In this document: in pieces, positions 3,954 through 43,852 of the stretch | Layout of the letters: each line of letters starts with the position of its first letter | Numbering within the stretch: position 1 is the first letter of the stretch | NCBI GenBank assembly: GCA_965644495.1 | Contig: CBFFSA010000007.1 | Coordinates: 434,001 to 498,000, forward strand | Origin: Perkinsela sp. CCAP 1560/9 | Lineage: Eukaryota; Protista; Euglenozoa: Kinetoplastea | Length of the DNA stretch: 64,000 bases | Reading direction: 5' to 3' | The notes under the pieces: generated by a model | The model's database searches: none | The model's input: the letters and a program-made list of their open reading frames with translations, nothing else | What the model was told of the DNA's origin: nothing | Position numbers and translations under genes: made by a program

Positions 3954-4003
3954 ATTCGGTGTTTTCTTCATGGGTTGTCAATATTTTCTTTTTCATAAAA
4001 ATA

Positions 4004-4750
4004 CAGTGGTGATCAGCGTCTTTTACCCCCCCCCCTACAGGTCTTGTATTTTGTCCGATTTTGGAAATATTTGGTATACCACCGTTTTTGACCAAATCGT
4101 TCCGAATCCGAGGTCTTTTTCACTCGAGCGATCCCCTACCCCCCCTAGCCATATAGGGGTCAAAAAGCCAATTACAACTTTTTCGGGTGTGCGTTTTGAA
4201 ATGTTTCGGATGAAGAACAGTAGTAAATTAGGTCAGCAGACGTGGAAAAGGAGTGCAAAGTAATCTCAAGTATTTAATCATATGTCCTTTGGCCCCCTTC
4301 ACTAAAAATAAATGCTTACGATAGTCCCGGAAGATATTCGTAAGCGTTTCCGGTTGATCTTCAGGAAAAAACGAAAAGTTTCAATGATGGACCAGGGGAT
4401 AAGTTTATGAAGACTTGCGACTGCCTTATAGGACTTAAATCGCTTATAATAAATTACGGGTATCGTGCGTATCTCGGGGCGCACTCGGAAGGAAGGTAAA
4501 CAGAGGGGGTCGTGCTTCTTCATCATGAATCACCAAACATGCACCATTTTTGAAAAAAATGCAATCTATGGAAAATTTATCGACTTTTTTGCAGATTCCT
4601 TTTCAGTTTAGGTATGATACAGGTGTTCACGAGTGAAAGGGACCTCGGATTCGGAACGTTTGGGTCGAAAAACAGTCCGCGACAAAATAATTTCAAAATC
4701 GGACAAAATGCAAGACCTGTAGGGGGGGCAAAAGACGCTGAACACCACTG
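4004..4750. mobile_element. Non-autonomous Tc1/mariner-type element (MITE family A)
   Basis: Long TIRs CAGTGGTG(A/T)TCAGCGTC...CCCCCTACAGGTCTTG with TA on both sides (4002-4003, 4751-4752). A second copy lies at 32681-33471 in the opposite orientation. Confidence 0.9.
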
Positions 4751-4761
4751 TAGATACAGTA

Positions 4762-5612
4762 CTGTGCCCCCCCCCACTTATAGTGCCGCGGTTTTCGACC
4801 AAACGGCACTATAAGTGGGGGGCGTAGTATTTTTCAGGTCGAGGGTGAAAATTTTCCGCCCTCGAAATAACGATAAAGACGAATAACTTCGTCACTGCAT
4901 GCTTACCATTTATTTTTTGGACCTATTTAAGGTGCACTTTCCTTAAAATTGTCTTTCGCTCTTTGTTAAAGCTTCTCTGGCGCTTTCTTCCTTTGAGGCC
5001 GTGATTAATGATTGATAAGAAGAGGCACCGTTGCTTTTAAACCCCCCGCACACTTATTATTCCGGATTTTTTCGCCCCCATTTTCCGGAATAATAAGTGT
5101 GCGCGAACACTTATTATTCCGGAAATTTTAGGGCCGTGTACTGCCATCCACCTGTTTCAACCCTCTAAGCATCATATTTTTGCTACTTACACGACTCCGT
5201 TCTATCATTTTTCTTTGCACAGGTTGTAAAATGTTTGACCGTATTTTCTTGTAAGGGTGGTAATGGGCAGGAGATGGGATTCCCGTGAGGGCTAAGGTGC
5301 TTTTCCTCTAGATTTGCCAATGTTTCTTCACCCCCTTTAACATGAAAACAAAGAATATTTCGAAGAACTTGCCCAATACGCTGTGCGATATAAACGTTTG
5401 TCCAGATATAGCTTTCGTAATCAACCTGCCCCCCCTAATACAGTATGCGCCTCGGAAGTTCGAAAAACGCACAGGACATAAAAGCGCCGCGAAGCAACGC
5501 ATTTTTTTTTTTTTTGGGGGGGGGGGGGGGGCGGGTTCTCCACCCTATTACGCCCTCCCCCTTAATATGCACAAACCCCAAAAACGTGTGCATATTAAAG
5601 GGGGGGTCACAG
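4762..5612. mobile_element. MITE family B ends (CTGTG-C-run termini, TA flanks, internal palindromes)
   Basis: TA|CTGTGCCCCCCCCACTTATAGTG at left and ...TTAAAGGGGGGGTCACAG|TA at right. The left end recurs inverted at ~38289-38390 and the right end at ~57710-57771. Confidence 0.6.
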
Positions 5613-31143: not shown

Positions 31144-32680
31144 GCTAGCATTGTTGGCTCCTCAAGTTTGATGTTCATGCGTTCGTTGGCGCAGAGATAC
31201 AGCCCTTGATGCGACAGCCGATATCATCGGCTCAATCCGTAATGACGGATGTCGCACCAAGTATATTAATCATGCAGTTGTACTGCAGAGATTAGCCCTG
31301 GACAAGTGAGCACGCCCAAAACGTGCTGCTTGTTCGGGTTTGCCGTTTCACTGAAAGCTGTGCACCTCCCACGTAGGGTTCTCGCGGTGCTGATATATTA
31401 CGAAGCTTCCCCTGATAGCGCGCTGGGCCATTGTTTCCCTACATTCGGAGGCAAGGCTCTTGTCTCCTCCGAAAAGAGAGTTCAACGCGCGAGTGGTGGA
31501 GTTAAGCTTTCCTCTTGCACCCACCTCAAAAACCAGTAAAAATGTAGATGGATTGATCAGCTTTCTCTGATTATAGATAAACGAATACTTTTGAACCTTC
31601 CGCTCATGAGCATCAGCAAAGTTTTCTTCCCATGGTGAGGTCAACTCGATGATGAATTCCGCCCCATTGTGCAACTTTAACCACCCGTCTGGTCTCAATT
31701 CAGTTTCTTGCGAGAGCCAGGCGGGAGGGTTTCTGTATTGTTGCAAGTCGAAGTGTAAGTGGGCCGTGTGGGGAGATGAGGACATGGCTTCCGCGAGTGT
31801 CGAAAGGGTGAGGTCGTGCCGGTAGTTGTATCTCCCTTGGCTTAGAGCTACCGAGCATCCCGTTAATATATGACGTGGTGTCTGCATGGCTTCTCGGCAA
31901 ATTGGGCACTTTGCATCCGTGTGGGTGGATATACCCCATCGACGGAGGGACGCACGGGTCGGTAGAGGGGTTTGAGTCAATACGGATGCCGCGAAACGCG
32001 AGAGAGAAGGGCTCTTGATATTGCATAGGGCAGACGCAAACTCTTTTGCTAACTCGCCTTCAGTGGCCATTTGAAACCATTGGCAGGCGATCGTAGTTCG
32101 TCGCTGCACAGACGCGGCGAGGAAACGCTCGTACTCGTCATTTACTGTCTGCCGTAACCGTCTTGGGCCGTCACGATTCTCGTAGAGCTGAACAGCTGGG
32201 CGGATGCGTCCGGATGATCTCCTGTTTTGCTCGGTGGCAATCCTCTGTCTCAAAGCTTGCAAAACGGCGGGGTCGCGCGATCGATTCATTTGGGAAATAG
32301 CTGACGCAGTGCACTGCAGCCACAGCTTCGTTATACTGGTTATGCTCCATCCGCGTTCTGAGTAAATGAGCTCGCTTGTGGCGGTTTTCGCAATATTGAG
32401 CCACTTCCGTATACGTGTTGTCACTAGTTTTTGTAGACGGAGAACGAAGTTAAAGGTTAATCCAGGATTTACTGTGAGAACATAGCGCAGTCTGGAAATA
32501 ATAGCATTATTATAAATATATATGGTTATATCCACAGTCGTGCTGGTTGTTCGTGCGCACTTTCCGATATGTTATCCAACCACGTTCTCAATTTCGAGCG
32601 CAGAGATGAAAATAGAGTTTTGCCTTGCTGTGCTCCGGGTGCGAGAGTCATCCCCAAGAAGCAGCTACCCTTATCACATG

Positions 32681-33471
32681 CAGTAGTGTTCAGCCTCTTT
32701 TACCCCCCCCTACAGGTCTTGTAATTTGTCCGATTTTGGAAATATTTTGTATGGGACTGTTTTTTGACCCAATCGTTCCGAATCCGAGGTCCTTTTCACT
32801 CGTGGACACCTGTATCATACCTAAACCGGAAAAAAACTGCAAAAAAAAGTCGATGTTTTTTTCACAGTGCATTTTTTTAAAATTGGTACATTTATTTGTG
32901 ATTCATGACGAAGAGGCACCGCCCCCTGTGTTTACCTTCCTCCCGCGTGCGCCCCGAAATGCGCACGGCACTCGCAATCGATTACGAGCGACTTAAGTCC
33001 TATAAGGCAGTCGCAAAACTCCAGCGATGTCTCGCCGCGTAAAGGATGTGCTGAAACCCCGAAACAGGACTCAACTTCGGGAGTCCATCATTGAACGTTT
33101 CGTTTTTTTCCGAAGATCAACCGGAAACGTTTAAGAATATCTTCCGGAACTATCGTAAACATTTACTTTTGGTCAAGGAGGCCAAAGGGCATATGACTAA
33201 ATACTAGAGATTACTTTGTACTCTTTTTCCACGTCTTCTGACCTACTTTACTACTCATATTCATCCGGAAAATTCGAAAAAATGCCCCGAAAAAAGTCGC
33301 AATTAGCTTTTTTGACCCCTACCTGGCTAGGGGGGGGTAGGGGGTCGCTCGAGTGAAAAGGACCTCGGATTCGGAACGATTGGGTCGAAAAACGGTGTTA
33401 TACCAAATATTTCCAAAATTGGACAAAATACAAGACCTGTAGGGAGGGGTAAAAGAGGCTAAACACCACTG
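32681..33471. mobile_element. MITE family A copy inserted in the retroelement RT
   Basis: TIRs match 4004-4750. Removing the element and one target-site dinucleotide restores the RT frame IPHI-CDKGSCFLG. One TA flank is mutated to TG. Confidence 0.9.
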
Positions 33472-33768
33472 TATGTGAGGAATCGGTTGTCCACAAGCCA
33501 TAATACGGGGGCGATGGGTCATATATCCTCCCTCATGTACTGCCATGTGTTGCGTCCGACATTTCTTGACATTTAGCTGAAGACCCATGATGCCTAATGC
33601 CTTTATCAGGGCATTTGTTACTTGTTGCATTTCTCCTGGGGTATTGGTCATAATTGTTACATCGTCTGCGAATGCTTTGAGGAAAGATTGAGTGTCATTC
33701 CACACTATGCCAAGTAGTTTTATCATGCACTTATAGTGCAGAGATTTACTCATCATGTCCTTATCCCG

Positions 33769-34310
33769 CATACGACGGGTGGATCATGTGAGGTTTCGTC
33801 CTCGCCGGAGGTGTGCGGGTGCGGAGAGCTGGCGTCCCAGGTGCAGAGAGCTCGGTTGTCATGTGCAGGTGCAGAGAGCCGGATGCGTAATCCCCATATT
33901 ACAGTTTCGGGGGCAATCCGGGTGCAGAGAGCTGCGACAGAGCCGAGGTGCGGAGAGCTGGGCGACCGCCAGGTGCAGAGAGCCGAGCCTCGTCGGCGGA
34001 GGACACGTCTAGTGGTCCTCAAGGGAGGCCACCGTGACGCATGGCCCTCTCGGAGAGGAAAAAGACAAGTCGAAAAAAAGCCGAGAGGGGGAAGCACACT
34101 CACTCCAGGGGAGTGAGTCGGGGAGGGGTGAAGTGGTGAAAGCGCGTCCCCTGCTTCAGCGACAAGAGGGACAGTTCCGACCTTAGTGCCGGCCGGCAAC
34201 GGGCATAAAAATACAGTAAGAGTATGCCCGTTGCCGGGGAAAGAAAGGATTAACTCAACAAGGTACAGAAACTAGTTGGGTAGAGTTGATCTTAGGTAGC
34301 GAAAGACTAC
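33769..34310 (+). ncRNA. Unknown highly structured insertion with six GTGCRGAGAG motifs (candidate ncRNA or non-autonomous element)
   Basis: Nested helices visible by eye. G-U pairs favour the + strand. It replaces the RT3-RT4 portion of the host retroelement. Confidence 0.6.
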
Positions 34311-37300
34311 TTCTATGGTGCTCCAGAAGCTCACACAAAGCCTGTGTATGCTCGATCGTTCCGTTGACCCCAGGTAAGAACCCCTGCTGTATAGTTGTAT
34401 CTATGATTCCCGTGGATGTGACATGCTCAAGAATTCGATGGCTAATTATCGTGTGGAATAGTTTACCCAGACAGCTTGTGAGGCAAATTAGACGCCAGTT
34501 CCCAAGATTGCTGGTTTCCCCATCCTTATGTGTCAGAAGAGTGGCTCCTCGTTTCCAGCTATCGGGGCACGTACCGAAGGTAAGGAGGTCGTTGAAAGCC
34601 TGTGCTATGGAAGGATATAGAGCTGCGCAGCGTTTTAAGACAGCGTTCCCAATGGTATCTGCGCCAGGGGCAGCGGATGGTCTCTTTGAAGCTATCGCCG
34701 CCTCGATGGCACTGCAATCGATCTCAGCCCAATACATGTCTGACTGTACCTGAGGTCCCAAGAGCTCTGTGGGAGGAAGTCCATAGTTTTCTTGTGGGGT
34801 TTGCATGCTATTCCGAAAATAGGTTGTGATTTCCTCCTAGGAGCAGTCCGGGTACTTGCCCCACCGCTGATCTGCCTCTTTCGTGTGCGCATCAAGGCAT
34901 TCCCCAGCTGCAGTCCCAGGATTTCTTTGGAATCGCACTTTAGCCCAGCGCTTGGCGATCTCCTCTCGTTGTGTCCTGCTTTCTTCTGCATAGACTTTTA
35001 GCAGCTTACTAGCTTCTTTTATTTCTCCTTTTAAGCGGTCGCGTTCCACTCGTCCATGGCTGTATCGCAGTGATATTTTGAGCCGGCGGATATGGCCCTC
35101 CATTTGCTTGGCTGAACGGTCGGCTGCAAGGGGTCGAGATCTACGTTGGGCGCGTCCTGTGTGGGTGCGTAGGCGAAAGCCTTCCACTGCGTCAGCCTTG
35201 CACGCAGTCTCGTAGGCACTCACCGCAATACTTGCAGTCAGAAGTTCTGCCTGGTGTTTAGCTTCATCTGCGGTAGTTGCAGGGCGCAGAAATTTCGCGC
35301 ATCGCTCTGCTGCGCGTCTTTCGGTCTGCTTCCACTGATCGCTAGAAAAGTGAATCATAATTCTTCCTCCTTCAATGGACTTCAGAGTTCTTAGGAGGGA
35401 TGCGCTCGTCTCTTCCTCGTTGTGCGTCCTCTGTGACGACATTATTCTGTTTGCGTTGCGTGATCGACGGCTCGGTGCACTGGATTGGAGCATTGACGGT
35501 TGTAGGGGTGGCTGTGGGGGTGATTGGGGGCTGGGCAAAGTGGTGTCTGGGCCATCTGCCACGCCGCGTGTGGTAGAAGTTTCGTTCGCGTGTGCAGGTG
35601 TTCGGCTTTCCGTCCGTGCTGTGCGGAGGTGCGCTTCCTCTGTTACGTTTGTTGCCGGTACTCTGTGTTCCGTCTCTGTTCGGTTTCCACTGTTCAGCGC
35701 AGTACTTGGACGAGTATTACCATGATCATTTCGGGTTTGCGCAGTCTCTGGCTGTGCCTGGGTCACATGTTCAGTTGAGGGATTCGATTCGTCAGGGTGG
35801 ATCTGCATGTACGACCCGGAGATAAGGCTACGCAGGCCCCGGAGCCCGGCCCACACGAGTGAGTTGACCACAGGTCGGACTGAGGAGGTGGACACACCAT
35901 CCTTGCAGCACTTGTGCTTGCAAGTAGTTTTATCAAAGCATTTGGGTAAGCACGGGCGGAGCTGGGTTTGTGGTTCTGGAGCACGCGTGTTGTTCTCTAT
36001 CGCCGGAGGTGTGCCGACGGAAAGAGGGACTGATAAGGGTGGGGTTTCATTTCTTTCAGCGGACGAGGGTAACAGGTTCCTCTATAGCAGGTCAGCCACC
36101 GGTTTCACGATACCTCGCTGGAGCTTTGGTGACCACAGGTCGTTTTATCGCGGCAGGAGTGTTTACATGGCTGCTCTACGGGAGTTTTTACAAGGGCTGC
36201 GGTGGGTGTAGCTTGTTTCCCGTTCCCTGTCGTCAATGCTGTAGGTTCTGTCGCATGAGTTAGGGATATAGGGCCAGAATGGAGCACTGCTCGCTCAGGG
36301 ATTAGGGACTCATGTGTGGCGTCTCGAGGCGGCGTTAGCGGCACACCAATTTTGCAGCATACGTGCTTGCAATGGGCTTTGTCCCGGCAGATGTTTTTAC
36401 AAGGGCGATGTGTGGGCAGGATCGAGGCCATTGGGGAGGACTCGTCCGGGACTGTACTTGTGGGCTCGGGCATTAAATCCAGGGTGTCCGCTCGCTCTAG
36501 GCCGGGCGCTGGCTGAGGGGAAGGGAGGGGCGCGAGATCGTTTGAAAGCGGGATGCCATCGTTTGTGACTTTACAACATAGGTGTTTGCAGGTAGCTTTG
36601 TTGCTGCAATGGTGCGCACATGGTCTCGTCCTTCGCAGAGTAGCACCGGGATCCGCGTTCGTGTTGTGCCGCGTCCGTATGCGATAAGACTCGTCGTAAT
36701 CCACTTCTTTGAGCTTCCAATATGAGCCTTCTTCCTCGGTTGACTCGCGTTGAATAATCAAAATTTCATATCCCGATAATGCAATCATGCTCCGCCCTCC
36801 CAACTTCTTAATGGCGCGACCTAGAGCTCCTGCCGAGGAATATGCGCCAGTGAGGTTCATGTCTTTGTCCGCGTATGCCGATGTCCAACTGGTGTGGCGG
36901 AAAGTCCGTTGTTCTCCATCTACTTCACGGAATTTGATGTAATCGCAACATCTTTGGTCCATAACGTCACTTATGTTGCATGTTTGGATCAGAATTCCAT
37001 CAGGTCGCTTGGCGCCTGATTTTAAGGTTCGTGCAATAGAAAGTTCTGCCGTGAGTTCTGCATTAAAAGCCCCCTTTTCCGTTAGAAACTGTGCTGCTGC
37101 GTGGATGTGGGGAAAGTAGGCCCATTTGCTCGCTTCAGGGTGTCTAATGCGAATTGGCACTGCACTAGTGCGTGTCGGGCGAAAGCTTTCTTCGTGAAAT
37201 GGCTCTGCGCTGGCAGATCCTCGAGGGGTGGATGGACATGCCCCTTGTGGGGATAGCAGTTATACGGTAACTAAAAAAAGTGTTCAAATGTTTTAACAAA

Positions 37301-37524: not shown

Positions 37525-37845
37525 TTACCAAACCAAAATGACCGAAACGTAATACTTCGTAAGTCCCCTCTTCGCCCTAATTACTGCCCTCAAACGAGGG
37601 GGTATGCTACGGACAAGAGGAAGACATGCACTCGGAGGAAGGTCTGCCCATGCTTTTTGGGCGCGTTCCCAAAGCTCCAACATTCGTACGGGAGGATCTG
37701 GATGATCCGCAGTTGACTTTTTGAGCTCGCCCCATAGGTGCTCTACGGGATTTAAATTGGGAGACTTCGAGGGCCAGTCTAGGACACACAATTCTTGTAA
37801 ACGAAGGAATTCCCGGGCCTACTCGTGTGCTTTGGATCATTATGG
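37525..37845 (-). mobile_element. Tc1-type transposase C-terminal fragment
   Basis: NDPKHTS (frameshifted), then WPSKSPNLNPVEHLW and AVIRAKRGLTKY. Confidence 0.85.
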
Positions 37846-38049
37846 ACCACCTCTACCGACTGAGACCGAGTCGGTTGCAGTACGCCCCTCCGGCTGCGTA
37901 AACAGAGGGCGAGTTGCCTGGACCACCTCTACCGACAGAGTCCGTGCTAATCCCCTTGGTGCGACATCCGTCATTACGGATTGTACCGATGACTTAGGCT
38001 GTCGCATCAAGGGCTGTATCTCTGCGCCAACGAGCGCATGAACATCAAA
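37843..38049 (+). mobile_element. SINE-like element sharing the 3' end of the HERO-like retroelement
   Basis: 37955-38049 is a near-identical reverse complement of 31167-31261. The 5' part is unrelated and carries an 18-bp direct repeat (37843-37860, 37919-37936). Confidence 0.7.
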
Positions 38050-39241
38050 ATTTGTCTAAAAAGCAAAAAAAAATTCCCAATCTGCAGTTGCTAGAAAAAT
38101 AGTGTCTTGACCTTAAAATGCGATTTCTTACCGTGTTATTGATAGAAAAGTTGCTCTGTCGCTTCTAAAAAAGGGACGTCGCCCGCTCCTGTCGCTGGGA
38201 GGGGGGTAGGTATAATAAGTGGGCATGGGTATACTATCCTGGAACATGGTTTAGAAAGAAGAGCTCCGCGAAACAGCGCGCTTTTTTTTGAGGGTGGAAA
38301 AATTTTCACCCTCGACCTGGAACATATTACCCCCCCACTTATAGTGCCGTTTGAACGAAAACCTCGGCACTATAAGTGGGGGGCACAGTATATATTAAAA
38401 TTCATTTTCCTTTATTTTTGACCGGAGTATCTCAGTACAGATTATTGTCATTGTATGGAAATATAAATTTCGATCTTTAAAGGTGCATACATAAAGGGTG
38501 TATAATGACGCGTTTTTTAACTTGGATGCAATGCTGCACGAAGTATACTACGGCTACCGAATGCAAGGATGCGTTTCTTTTTTACGTGGTGCGTCCCTAT
38601 TTTCCAAGTCTGTGCTTTCTGTATTTAGTGCACTCATTTTTGCCGAATCAAAATCATCTTCGTGCGACACTCAATCGGGGGTGGATTGCTTTACCCGTGC
38701 CTACCAAAAAGAATGCGTTACATAAGCGTGAAAATGTTTTAATGTTTGAGCAATCAAGCATTAAAACGAAAATCCTGAACTACAGTATTTTTCCCTCTTA
38801 CCCCTCGGCCTTTTCTATTTTCGCCGTCGCACGTGTCCAAAATCACGCTGATGGAGATTCTGAAAGTGGAGATTCGTATAACAATGATCAAATCAGGGTA
38901 CTGGGTTTTTTGAATATGTGGATTCGCTTCTAGTGATGGGTCTACACGCTACACACTGGGAGATGCATTACTAATTGCAAATATAAAAAAATTATTTCTT
39001 GTATTCATAATTGTTTCCCCCGTTTAAGCACACCTCGTTTTCCGTGAGTTCTATTCCTTCCGAATGAACCTTCAGCTGGATCGTTTCAAAAAAATTCGAA
39101 CTTTTTCGAACCGACCAAGCGTTGAAACGCTACATACAAAAGTGCTCTAGATAAGAGTGGTTTCAGGGTTTCACGGAGGTTACATTTATGGGCTACACAT
39201 TACTTACACCTTATATTGTACCCATACGAAAGCGTTACTCT

Positions 39242-39496: not shown

Positions 39497-40289
39497 AAGG
39501 GACTTTTTTCCCCCAAGATTTTTTTCTATTTATTAAAATATTTTATAAAAATATTTATAGAACTTTCCAACTTCAAGACCCCTTTTCTGAATACTTACTC
39601 TTGGCTGGTTAAAAATCTTTCAAAATCATCCAACGCCCCGTCACAAGCACCCTTTACTTTGGAAAACCTTTGCAGTGTCTTGAGGAATTCCACAAACGAA
39701 TGTTCACGACGCAAGCTCAGAGTTGAGCGGGCATGCATCCAAACGCGAAGTGATGCACATCGACGATGCCTCTCTTGTTGGTCTCAGCGCCCGCAACTCT
39801 GCGCTCGAATAACCTCCTGCCCAGTCTCGTCAAAATGGACAAGTAAGTGGGGGGTGGGACTATGACAAATACAGTACCTCAAGAAACTGATCACACTTTC
39901 TCGCGTTGAACATTGTGGTAAGAAAATGTTTATAAAACATATTAGAAGGGTGAAACCAGCTCGGTTCTAGCGTGTTCCCCCGTGTTTGGTCGAGTTAAGA
40001 GTTCGGACACTTAACTTGTGGAGAATATGCAGTTTCTTTCTAATCTTTTAGTTTGTATTTTGTAATTTTTTTTATTCGTTTTTTTGAAACGCGGCATTCC
40101 CTCTATATTTTTACCCAGTACTTGAACCATGTAGGTCCATTGGGGGGGTATATGATTTTAAAACAAGCAATCAAATTAGCGATTTCACATGTGCCCAAAA
40201 CTAGCAATTCAACCTGCCTTAAGTTATTTATGATTCTGATAACAATAATAATAAAAAGAAGCAATCCAGGCCCAGTCCATTCGCGCTTT

Positions 40290-41750
40290 CCGGACCGGGT
40301 CTTTCGACCTCTCCACGGCCTGACTTGTGAACCCTTCGCTTGCTATATGGGAGGGCGCAGGCGCGGGCCTGTGTCGACAGCAACACGGCCGCGAAACAGG
40401 ATGAATTTTTTTTATCCCCCGTAATACCAAAGAAGTTTGTGGCCTTGGTAACCTTCGATAGGACCCATCCCTCTTCAACTGCTTCCGTGGCGCCAATATA
40501 CGCCCCCAGAAGTTTAACGCCCCCCGGAGCATGTTGCATCCTGCTCCCCGAGAAGACCGAGTACAAGTCCGGGTGGCGGGTAGCCACCATGCACTTGGTC
40601 GTATTGAGCTTTAGGCCCAAAAACTTGATCTCCTCTTCCAAGGAGTCAAAGGCATTTACGCACACCCCGGGCTCCGCGGCTATGGTTTTATCATCCAGAT
40701 ATGCCCATAGTTTTAGACAGCCAGAGTATTTTGCCGCCACGGCCGAGATGGCGCCCTGTATCCCTAAGGCAAAAAGGATGGGCGCCATCGGGTCCCCTTG
40801 TTTCACCCCCCGGGAGCTAGGGATGGCAATCCCCTCCCGCAGGTGGAGCTTGCTAGGGGTCCCGTACCCGAAAAGGGAAATGCCGATCATAGGGGAAAGG
40901 TTCGGATACCTTTTCAAGGCTCGGAAAATGGCCGCGCGGGAAATGCTGTTAAAGGCATTTTCCACTTCGACCGCCGCGGTCACCTCATCGGGTCTGTCGC
41001 GGAAGTGATCTCTCACTACGACGTGCTCGCATCCTTGAGTGTATTGGGCTCCGAATTGGAGGCCCTGAAACACAGCAGGGAGGTGGTCTCTGACCTGTTC
41101 GAGGGCTAGTAGACCCGCGAGCTTCAAGATGCCCCCCCTCATGGCAATGGGCCTGTACGAGGAGTGGTGTCCCACTGGGGCCCCAGGCTTGTTAAAGAGC
41201 TTGAGGTTAGCTCCCGTGAGAAAATCCCTCATCGTGGGAGGGAGGGAGGGGGTGGGGATCCCTTGGATGATCCAAGTGACCACGTCCCTCGGGTCATCCT
41301 CCTGTAGGATGGGGACCAGGAGTTCCTTGGTCCATCCGGACGAGCCTGGCGCTCTAAGCGGCGCAAGGCTAGTTGCCTTTCGGACAACGTCTGCCGCCGA
41401 CGGGAGGGGTCCATGACTTTCCTTGTCATAGACGAACTTGGGGGTGTTATAAGGACCTCCCGTAGGGTGGAGGCGTTCCACCTGTTCCCCCGCTGTAGCC
41501 GGGTTTGCCGACGGATCGAGGGGGCTTCCAAGATTTTAGCCGCCTTCGAGAAAGCCCCCGCCCGGATCAGCTCAGTGACTCGTTTGATAACAGAACGGGG
41601 GAAACTGTTGGTGAGGAGGGGAGTAGAAGCGATGGTTTCTGACCTCTCTAGGTTAGCCCGTTTCCGTAACTCCCTCGCCAACTGCCTCTGGGACAGCTTG
41701 TCCTCGGGGAAAAACAGGAACCGTTTAACCCCGAGGGGGGTTACAATTTT
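40290..41750 (-). mobile_element. Truncated CRE-clade-like non-LTR retrotransposon RT
   Basis: APGSSGW, YRPIAM, LQFG, NAFNSISR, SSRGVKQGDPMAPILFAL, AYLDD, GLKLNTTKC and GVKLLGAYIG. Frameshifted and truncated at both ends. Confidence 0.85.
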
Positions 41751-42371: not shown

Positions 42372-43852
42372 GACGTATGTAAAATTGAGTAAAAATCAAA
42401 TTACTTACTTACTTCTTTCAATAAATGCTTACATCAATACTTTGTGTAACCGCCCTTGGCCGTGATTACCGCTTGCATACATCGCGGCATGCTTTCGACC
42501 AGAGTACGGCAGTATGCGGGGGATATGGTCTCCCACATTTCCCTGGAACGGTCCACAAGCTCCCCGATATTCGCCGGTGGCGGTTCAACTTCACCCAGCT
42601 TTGCCTTCTGTTGGCCCCAAAGATTCTCAATGGGGTTTAACTCCGGTGACTGCGGCGGCCATCCAGACAGAACTTGAACTCCCACGCTGGCGAAATGCTC
42701 CTTTGCAATCTTGCTGGTCTGTTTTGGGTCATCATCCTGCTGGAAGATAATTTTGCCCATGTTGTCACCCAGTTTTCGAAGTGAGGCGGGAAGGTTCTCC
42801 GCTAGTATGTCCTTGTACTGGGAGGCGTCCGTATTACCTTGAACGATTTGAATGGTTCCAATACCATCTTTGGACATACACCCCCACGCCATTATGCTCC
42901 CCCCACCGTGCTTTAGAGTTCCTATGACGGTTCGGGCACTAGGTTCACCAAGCCTCTTCTACACCCAGTGAATACCATCAGATCCGAAACGGTTGATTTT
43001 GGTTTCGTCGGAAAAATACAATGAAAACCACTCTTCCTTCCAAATATTGTGGTCGAGGGCAAATTTTAAATGCATAGCACGGTGTCTATCGCTCAGGAAG
43101 GGTTTTCGCTGACGCTTCCGACCCCCCAGACCATCAGAGCGCAAGATATTACGAATGGTTTCTGGCGAAACATTGCCGATGCCTTCACGGCAGAAACGAT
43201 TCCGCACTCCCACAGGAGTCCTTTCCGCCCCGCTCTCAATTAGACGCTGAGAGCGCCTTATCGAGGTCTCAGAGAGCTTTCTACGGCGACCTCCCTTGTT
43301 GATTGGACGCGGCGTCACGTTCATCGACCTTATTGTGCTCACTGCACCTCCCTTTCGGGATATTTTTCTATGTGAGTCACCATTGTCTATTATTTCATTG
43401 ACTTGTTTTAGCTTTGAATTCGACAAACGTAGTGGTATGTGGATAATACAAAAATATATTGGTTTGGTGGCAATTCTTTTCTTATCTCTCAGTAAATATT
43501 TTTTACCATTTTTTTTATTGGTTTCTATCGTTTTGTACCCAAGGTTTGTCAATGCCACCCCGGTTGTCGAGGTCCTGTCATGGTAAGTACTTGCCAAGGT
43601 CCTGACGAATATGAAGATTATTGACCGATTGTGGTATAATAAATTTGGCTTACTATTCATATTATGAATAATAATAAGCAGTTGTGACATAACTGCGAGA
43701 GTTTGAAATCAAGGCCTTTAAGTCATTTAATATGTAGAATTTGATGTTTGTTTTAGAATTTCTAAGCGTAACCTCAGCCCACGTTTTCTTTAATCAAAAT
43801 TAGCCGAAGGTAAGAGACCACCTAGGCATTACTCACATTTTTACCTGTACTG
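42372..43852 (-). mobile_element. Near-complete Tc1-family transposon with a premature stop
   Basis: FSDETK...KHGGGSIMAWGC...FQQDD...WPPQSPELNPIENLW. ORFs 42959-43690 and 42434-42892 are in frame across one TAG. A TIR beginning CAGTAC ends at 43852 next to TA, with a degenerate partner at ~42372. Confidence 0.9.

Follow-up and report, generated by a model that had tools for sequence, protein, structure and literature searches.

The region of Perkinsela DNA that carries six copies of the motif GTGCRGAGAG forms the middle module of a SINE-like retroposon of 557 bp, which lies at positions 33717–34273 on the minus strand of the window (by which we mean the whole 64,000-nt stretch analyzed here). 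The retroposon is non-coding, dispersed and was recently active; its RNA corresponds to the minus strand of the window, and it is an undescribed SINE that is headed by a spliced leader (SL) and partnered with the R2-like LINEs of the same genome. Comparison of its copies supports an arm within the middle module that is a real, selected structure, namely a rod without branches whose three loops each have two-fold symmetry. Each motif repeats one strand of the hairpin that closes both SINE and LINE, and the six motifs may act as additional docking sites for the LINE protein.

Copies, ends and strand of the element

A search of the genome (21 Mb in 110 contigs) found at least 40 near-full-length copies of the element, here called family A, which are 87–100% identical and lie in both orientations. 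These copies have exactly window positions 33717–34273 in common, and their flanks are unrelated. In public runs of the same organism the read depth over the element is ∼40–60 times that of single-copy sequence, and family A probably numbers 45–60 copies. The initial annotation had proposed an unknown mobile RNA; its mobility is borne out, but it is no longer unknown, being the SINE-like partner of R2-like LINEs. The main features of the window copy, several of them common to two sister families (B and C), are as follows.

33717–34273, minus strand: complete family A copy of the SINE-like retroposon, 557 bp long against a consensus of ∼570 bp, sitting in the RT region of a LINE
34256–34273, minus strand: SL exon, the last 18 nt of the host's 38 nt, with which the element RNA begins at its 5′ end; the letters are those of the exon in the SL RNA gene at L033
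34193–34237, minus strand: head hairpin with a 15-bp stem (inverted repeat I19), found in families A, B and C alike, the latter two with a compensatory change from C-G to A-U
34011–34033, minus strand: invariant hairpin at the boundary of head and middle, in all three families; 159 genomic matches with at most 2 mismatches
33798–34004, minus strand: predicted unbranched rod with basal stem, three symmetric internal loops and apical stem (33879–33884/33916–33921); from covariation, consensus fold and pair probabilities
33723–33745, minus strand: 3′-terminal hairpin (AUC-UC-UGCAC / GUGCA-U-GA), also present at the 3′ ends of LINEs; the motif equals its 5′ strand, UCUCUGCAC

The left end of the element in the window (the 3′ end of the RNA) is constant among copies, and the right end (the RNA's 5′ end) is ragged. 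Since this ragged end is the reverse complement of the SL exon, the element RNA corresponds to the minus strand. The same SL sequence is followed by GTATGAGAAGCT in each of two SL RNA genes arranged in tandem, other copies keep 16–31 nt of the 38-nt leader at their 5′ end, and a 16-mer of the SL exon occurs 484 times in the genome. In seven copies the SL abuts an internal pyrimidine-AG acceptor directly, as expected from fresh trans-splicing.

The joins between SL and body vary: most fall directly before GTAC, seven follow an internal AG, and that of the window copy lies two bases earlier. The terminal TG of the leader relic could itself serve as an acceptor and so renew the leader in each round; relaxed acceptors have been reported for Perkinsela. 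The SL RNA gene is present as two tandem copies 297 bp apart, outside large arrays (L033, G000:C1:661326-661638).

The element is non-coding, in that the overlapping frames of 126–150 aa run on into flanks that the copies do not have in common; we rejected ordinary coding sequence because these frames are not conserved as units. The surrounding genes are intronless and co-oriented, and the window copy is antisense to host transcription. For one host gene the nearest named homologue, at 48%, comes from the EukProt set PhF_6, a prokinetoplastid; together with the gene layout and a 38-nt SL exon present in hundreds of fragments, this fits a kinetoplastid host that is probably Perkinsela-like. The proposal that Rfam might name a family for the region led nowhere, as neither the window nor the element gave a match at the gathering score, and none fell below an E-value of 0.8. 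A classical Pol III SINE was likewise set aside, since Rfam recognizes no tRNA, 7SL or 5S head and the head is an SL exon. Among metagenome and viral contigs we found 126 triple-motif matches, of which 117 are plain tandem repeats and none is BLAST-related to the element, so that no relatives outside the organism were found in this set. Four runs contain the element, none of them recorded as RNA, and one run guessed to be RNA gave no match.

Partnership with R2-like LINEs

The window copy interrupts a LINE, whose remaining pieces lie on the same strand. A single-copy contig crosses the left SINE/LINE junction in two read sets.

34312–37205, minus strand: 5′ part of the host LINE (N-terminus, RT motifs 0–3), interrupted; tblastn with LINE relatives P0126 and P0141, 33–46%
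33451–33711, minus strand: LINE RT piece with the FADD motif; ∼100 codons are absent at the SINE insertion point
31270–32681, minus strand: LINE C-terminus, short 3′ UTR and terminal hairpin (31270–31292), with CCHC knuckle, restriction-like endonuclease motifs and Pfam zf-RVT

At this site the insertion of family A was accompanied by a deletion of ∼300 bp (the ∼100 LINE codons) and no target duplication, and no convincing target-site duplication was seen at ∼40 junctions of other copies. Deletions without target duplication are common with R2-type enzymes.

The 3′ part of the host LINE has 107 genomic matches, several of them with open frames of 1550–1860 aa; the CCHC and endonuclease motifs were read from the translation. 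For a full-length relative the best PDB matches are R2 proteins. The intact LINE frames, whose loci were compared by coordinates only, have an SL match at the start and the hairpin of the SINEs near the end, and the autonomous LINEs thus also appear to be SL-headed. At three loci (G000:C1:2073395, C1:3742181 and C3:390153) SL matches lie within ∼40 nt of the starts of intact frames of 1590–1640 aa. A 30%-identical LINE from another sample (L220:1-60, ENA ERZ27265265) starts with a different, bodonid-like spliced leader after an A run, on a contig that may be DNA or RNA.

The hairpin itself, searched as ATCTCTGCRS-loop-SYGCATGA, has 142 genomic matches, including sites ∼90–115 nt past LINE ORFs, and it closes both LINE 3′ UTRs and SINEs, as expected of a stringent LINE/SINE pair. 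Similarity between SINE and LINE is limited to the SL and ∼37 nt of tail. The tail folds as a stem with a UC/U internal loop, and compensatory changes keep this fold in L218 and L219, so that conservation covers another LINE subfamily and a 36%-identical LINE from an unrelated metagenome; UCUCUG and (Y)AUGA are retained in the latter. As a separate observation, an unrelated short repeat (window 38331–38383 and 4770–4822) forms a perfect 19-bp hairpin with GCACTATAAGTG, words of the family A tail loop.

The arm is an unbranched rod

The initial annotation described the module as a four-way junction with short side hairpins, and much of its base pairing stands. The basal stem (GTCCTC-GCCG / CGGC-GAGGAC) and the central arm (CTCGG/CCGAG, GTC/GAC, GCAG/CTGC and CCGGAT/ATCCGG) are present and held across copies. 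The junction itself is replaced by a rod, because the two side arms pair with each other: CTGGCG (33829–33834) with CGCCAG (33967–33972), and CCCAG (33836–33840) with CTGGG (33958–33962). Among 43 distinct copies, the pair 33832/33969 reads GC in 33, AT in 6 and AC, which is G-U in the RNA, in 3, and the neighboring pair 33833/33968 reads CG in 33, GC in 5 and AT in 1. These pairs are possible only if the side arms pair mutually, which gives the unbranched rod. Other genomic copies were indeed found to carry compensatory changes, as a selected fold would predict, and these support the rod and not the junction. Covariation is also seen at the basal pair 33806/33995; of six shared spacer changes, four make up two compensatory pairs; and the basal stem has been rebuilt yet remains paired among subfamilies (pair 56/247 in alignment A1 is C-G in 14, U-A in 7 and U-G in 4). 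In all, the compensatory support for the rod amounts to 2–3 independent events.

The rod is ∼8 kcal/mol more stable than the four-way junction on either strand, and pair probabilities prefer it over the side hairpins in most subfamily representatives. The CTGG..CCAG side hairpins are broken in 9 copies if read on the plus strand, or in 6 on the minus strand. The outer stems proposed in the initial annotation, GGTGG/CCACC and GGATCA/TGGTCC, did not survive either, as they compete with the hairpin at 34011–34033, which is kept in the three families whatever the middle and whose outer pair is U-A, U-G or C-G across them.

Folding energy, to which the initial annotation had looked for support, gives none for the region: relative to dinucleotide shuffles its z-score is −0.56 on the plus and −1.46 on the minus strand, no better than chance sequence. 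The rod alone, which covers ∼210 of 570 nt, scores −0.97 and −1.06, and the whole element −5.4 (sense) and −4.6 (antisense). Since the energy of the region is no better than that of shuffles, the fold is established by comparison of copies and not by energy. The series of changes from Watson–Crick through G-U to Watson–Crick work only on the minus strand. Some G-U pairs suit the plus strand better (33816/33985 and 33879/33921) and basal-stem energies are mixed, so that the strand call rests mainly on the anatomy of leader and tail.

The loop motifs copy one strand of the tail hairpin

The motif was found exactly where the initial annotation placed it, at six positions, and has no other exact match in the 64-kb window.

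33819–33828, minus strand: motif 1, CUCUCYGCAC in the RNA; Y polymorphic between subfamilies
33841–33850, minus strand: motif 2, exact match
33869–33878, minus strand: motif 3, exact match
33922–33931, minus strand: motif 4, exact match
33948–33957, minus strand: motif 5, Y polymorphic
33973–33982, minus strand: motif 6, Y polymorphic

Six copies in the module compare with an expectation of 0.04, and none of 20000 Markov simulations reached six. Each loop of the rod holds two motifs, which pair off as 33819/33973, 33841/33948 and 33869/33922; the facing motifs flank a UGCA/UGCA dyad, in which a C at the Y position makes a C-A mismatch on the RNA strand. Within CUCUCYGCAC lies UCUCUGCAC, which also makes up the 5′ strand of the hairpin in the element's own tail. 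The motif ends in GCAC, as does the family A tail, whereas LINE tails have GCAG, and the partner strand of the motif in the arm is without the conserved UGA.

Shared variants are unevenly placed: the nine remaining motif positions (54 nt) have one, the 6 Y positions have three, and the basal region has 29 in its 64 nt. The central arm, including its apex loop, is invariant between subfamilies, and because the apex loop is as invariant as the motifs, a recent exchange of arms between subfamilies may inflate the apparent motif conservation. A stronger argument than conservation is the layout, since the motifs are direct repeats while the spacers of the two arms are reverse complements of each other, an arrangement that simple duplication does not give. 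The earlier view of the region as a pseudo-symmetric, selected fold rather than a simple tandem repeat is therefore retained. The number of motifs is not fixed, and copies with four or seven exist.

Sister families with exchanged middle modules

Families A, B and C have head and tail in common, and their middle modules have been swapped. About half of the loci with the head hairpin were read. Family C has ∼28 copies with the same head and tail (L062, L074 and L032; e.g. G000:C1:35525-35588), and in its middle GCAUGA, which corresponds to the tail's other half, recurs three times, with a further near copy, in loops that face each other within a possible rod. Under a Markov model the probability of this repeat, which was chosen post hoc, is 0.0015. 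A rod is a possible fold for this middle, with AGCAUGA-AC building its two symmetric loops; the copies are too alike for covariation. In family B a 77-nt module is duplicated, with a UGCAG/CUGCG stem like the LINE tail stem, and variants with one and two modules exist (L068 and L038; in the window 37720–38052 on the plus and 31164–31268 on the minus strand). A 105-bp inverted repeat around the LINE, considered for its likeness to Giardia Genie-2-like termini, turned out to be two family B SINE tails in opposite orientation.

It is possible, if doubtful, that several SINE families separately built two-fold symmetric arms from halves of the recognition hairpin as multivalent traps for R2-like proteins, with six uses of the 5′ half in family A, three to four of the 3′ half in family C and two of the stem in family B. 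If true, such traps would be an avidity strategy against the cis-preference of LINEs, of which we found no report, and might suggest a design rule for R2-type template RNAs.

A model for the arm and its alternatives

Judging from its anatomy, the element would be read by polycistronic (read-through) transcription, its RNA would be trans-spliced and thereby gain the spliced leader, and the LINE protein would then bind the 3′ hairpin and insert the element by target-primed reverse transcription. We regard this series of steps, taken jointly, as very probable. Within it, the six motifs would be extra, non-priming docking sites that raise avidity and help the SINE compete with the LINE mRNA, and only the terminal hairpin would set the 3′ end for priming. 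We read the motifs as putative docking sites because they copy the conserved 5′ strand of the tail, UCUCUG, and face each other at a dyad, and we hold this role tentatively, as a real but somewhat less than even prospect. For binding in the 3′ UTR the R2Bm protein uses a small core that consists of stems and the single strands next to them (PMC10499050), and its binding determinants overlap with but differ from its priming determinants (PMC11194090). Since binding and priming are separable in R2Bm, half-sites could bind without priming. A counterpoint is that the LINE itself has one hairpin, which suffices.

Two other readings account for part of the same evidence. The motifs could be a by-product of template jumps or slippage by the LINE RT, which would have copied a piece of the tail repeatedly, with selection acting only for a compact RNA that has no ligand. 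The match of the motif to family A's own tail, down to the family-specific AC, fits this reading, as do exact deletions and duplications of 26–28-nt units in five copies, the unremarkable z-score of the arm, and the 1–4 internal repeats of 26–27 nt in EhSINE1 of Entamoeba, which have been ascribed to slippage (PMC2996970). Neither tandem nor inverted duplication, however, yields reverse-complement spacers together with direct-repeat motifs; the spacers have diverged fully but nine motif positions have not; and change in three separate motifs is restricted to Y. For these reasons we consider the by-product reading unlikely. Less likely again is that the CUCUC tracts bind a host protein, a PTB/DRBD-like or other pyrimidine binder that would control trans-splicing, 3′ processing, stability or localization. 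The U/C degeneracy suits pyrimidine recognition, CUCUCY resembles PTB-type sites, and the element relies on host trans-splicing, but the 9-nt identity with the tail would be left unexplained, as would the purine-rich other half in family C. RRM_5 (the PTB-type model) has no match above the cut-off in the genome, although PTB-like proteins of trypanosomes may escape this model.

The motifs might instead base-pair in trans with a tail's 3′ strand, either the element's own or that of a LINE mRNA, or the UGCA cores might dimerize, either of which would tether the SINE to LINE particles. Motif and tail 3′ strand do form the same bulged duplex, at −7.5 kcal/mol with the own tail and −4.7 with the LINE tail, but the local tail hairpin is equally or more stable (−7.8 to −10.0) and the common C variant lowers the duplex to −3.1, which makes this reading very unlikely. 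Finally, we give hardly any weight to the initial annotation's plus-strand junction, which would display GUGCRGAGAG for packaging or self-assembly; we found nothing that speaks for either role. On the plus strand the UGCR/UGCR pairs allow wobbles and the consensus fold is neat, and the window copy is antisense to host transcription; yet the SL at the 5′ end and the LINE-type tail at the 3′ end set the replicating RNA as the minus strand, so that the motif in the RNA is CUCUCYGCAC, and copies lie in both orientations. Shared variants, moreover, break the side hairpins, and the Watson–Crick/G-U/Watson–Crick series hold on the minus strand only. Docking of the LINE protein thus remains our preferred reading.

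Relation to known elements

The closest system in kind is EhSINE1/EhLINE1 of Entamoeba histolytica (PMC2996970), a non-coding SINE of 500–600 bp and a LINE with a restriction-like endonuclease (RLE) that have a short 3′ end in common, the SINE with variable internal repeats. EhSINE1 has 1–4 tandem units of 26–27 nt, target-site duplications and no SL, and a fold is not reported in that paper; the repeats here, in contrast, each correspond to half of the tail and sit in symmetric loops, and target duplications were not observed. Our literature search found no paper on a SINE arm made of recognition-hairpin half-copies. Such an arm may thus be new, whereas RLE SINE/LINE pairs and SL fragments near Perkinsela retrotransposons are known. 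The eel pair UnaL2/UnaSINE1 belongs to the L2 clade, with a tRNA-derived Pol III head and one recognition hairpin. Its common 3′ stem-loop has a small pyrimidine loop, in which a bulged C and a U-U mismatch are needed for retrotransposition (PMC1636434); the tail described here has its UC/U loop at the same position, and we claim no homology.

Among kinetoplastid elements, RIME, NARTc and SIDER of the ingi/L1Tc clade are likewise short, non-autonomous retroposons, but they are LINE deletion derivatives that begin with the Pr77 promoter/HDV ribozyme and end in poly(A), whereas the element here has only the SL and ∼37 nt of tail in common with an RLE-type LINE. We rejected this class since there is no similarity to the neighboring LINE beyond the tail and the partner is R2-like, not of the ingi clade; a search of the element with Rfam for an HDV-type ribozyme gave no match. 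CRE, SLACS and CZAR (PMC12278014) resemble the present elements in combining an RT with a restriction-like endonuclease and in being tied to the spliced leader. They insert site-specifically in SL gene arrays, however, while the elements here are dispersed and the SL exon is their own 5′ end; as the flanks of the element are unrelated to the SL gene repeat, this class was also rejected. In Perkinsela sp. CCAP1560/4 a 38-nt SL exon, >500 SL fragments, 24 of them next to retrotransposons, and an L1Tc-like transcript bearing an SL have been described (PMC5601477, Supplementary Notes 1.2–1.3). The elements reported there are of ingi type; the paper describes neither a SINE family nor a structured arm, and it considers the SL link worth further study.

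Candidates from outside retroposons were considered as well. A retrozyme or hammerhead was rejected because GACGAAAC at 33793–33800 (minus strand) is changed in other subfamilies, CUGANGA is absent and Rfam gives no match; a viroid-like, HDV-like or Obelisk rod RNA, because the element is linear with an SL head and a LINE tail; and K-turn pairs, because on reading the sequence GA is absent from both strands together. CsrB and RsmZ are bacterial multivalent RNA regulators with GGA hairpin loops. Like the arm, they present a short motif repeatedly in single-stranded parts, and the likeness is a functional analogy only.

Significance and neighboring elements

How a SINE takes the RT of a LINE from the LINE mRNA is understood in few systems. 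Intact R2-like LINEs together with three young SINE families that have one 3′ hairpin and a swappable middle form a natural experiment on template choice by R2-type proteins, which are now being engineered for gene insertion. The SINE families also give a concrete source for part of the hundreds of SL fragments in Perkinsela genomes. If the loops bind nothing, family A would be an ordinary though undescribed SINE family with a curious internal repeat.

Other mobile elements lie nearby. The same LINE holds a MITE-like element of 805 bp with 129-bp terminal inverted repeats (window 32674–33478), also found at 4001–4750, whose high read depth indicates many copies. Pieces of a Tc1/mariner-type transposase (DDE_3, HTH_Tnp_Tc3_2) are present at window 42434–43690 on the minus strand and at L218:4398-5518. 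Since no DNA transposon could be confirmed among 57 trypanosomatid genomes (PMC12278014), these pieces are notable in the present kinetoplastid. A second, distant RT-bearing element at window 40228–41481 (minus strand) is 27% identical to the R2-like LINEs and is related to a 5093-bp tandem repeat (G000:C1:2477645-2492938) that starts with an SL.
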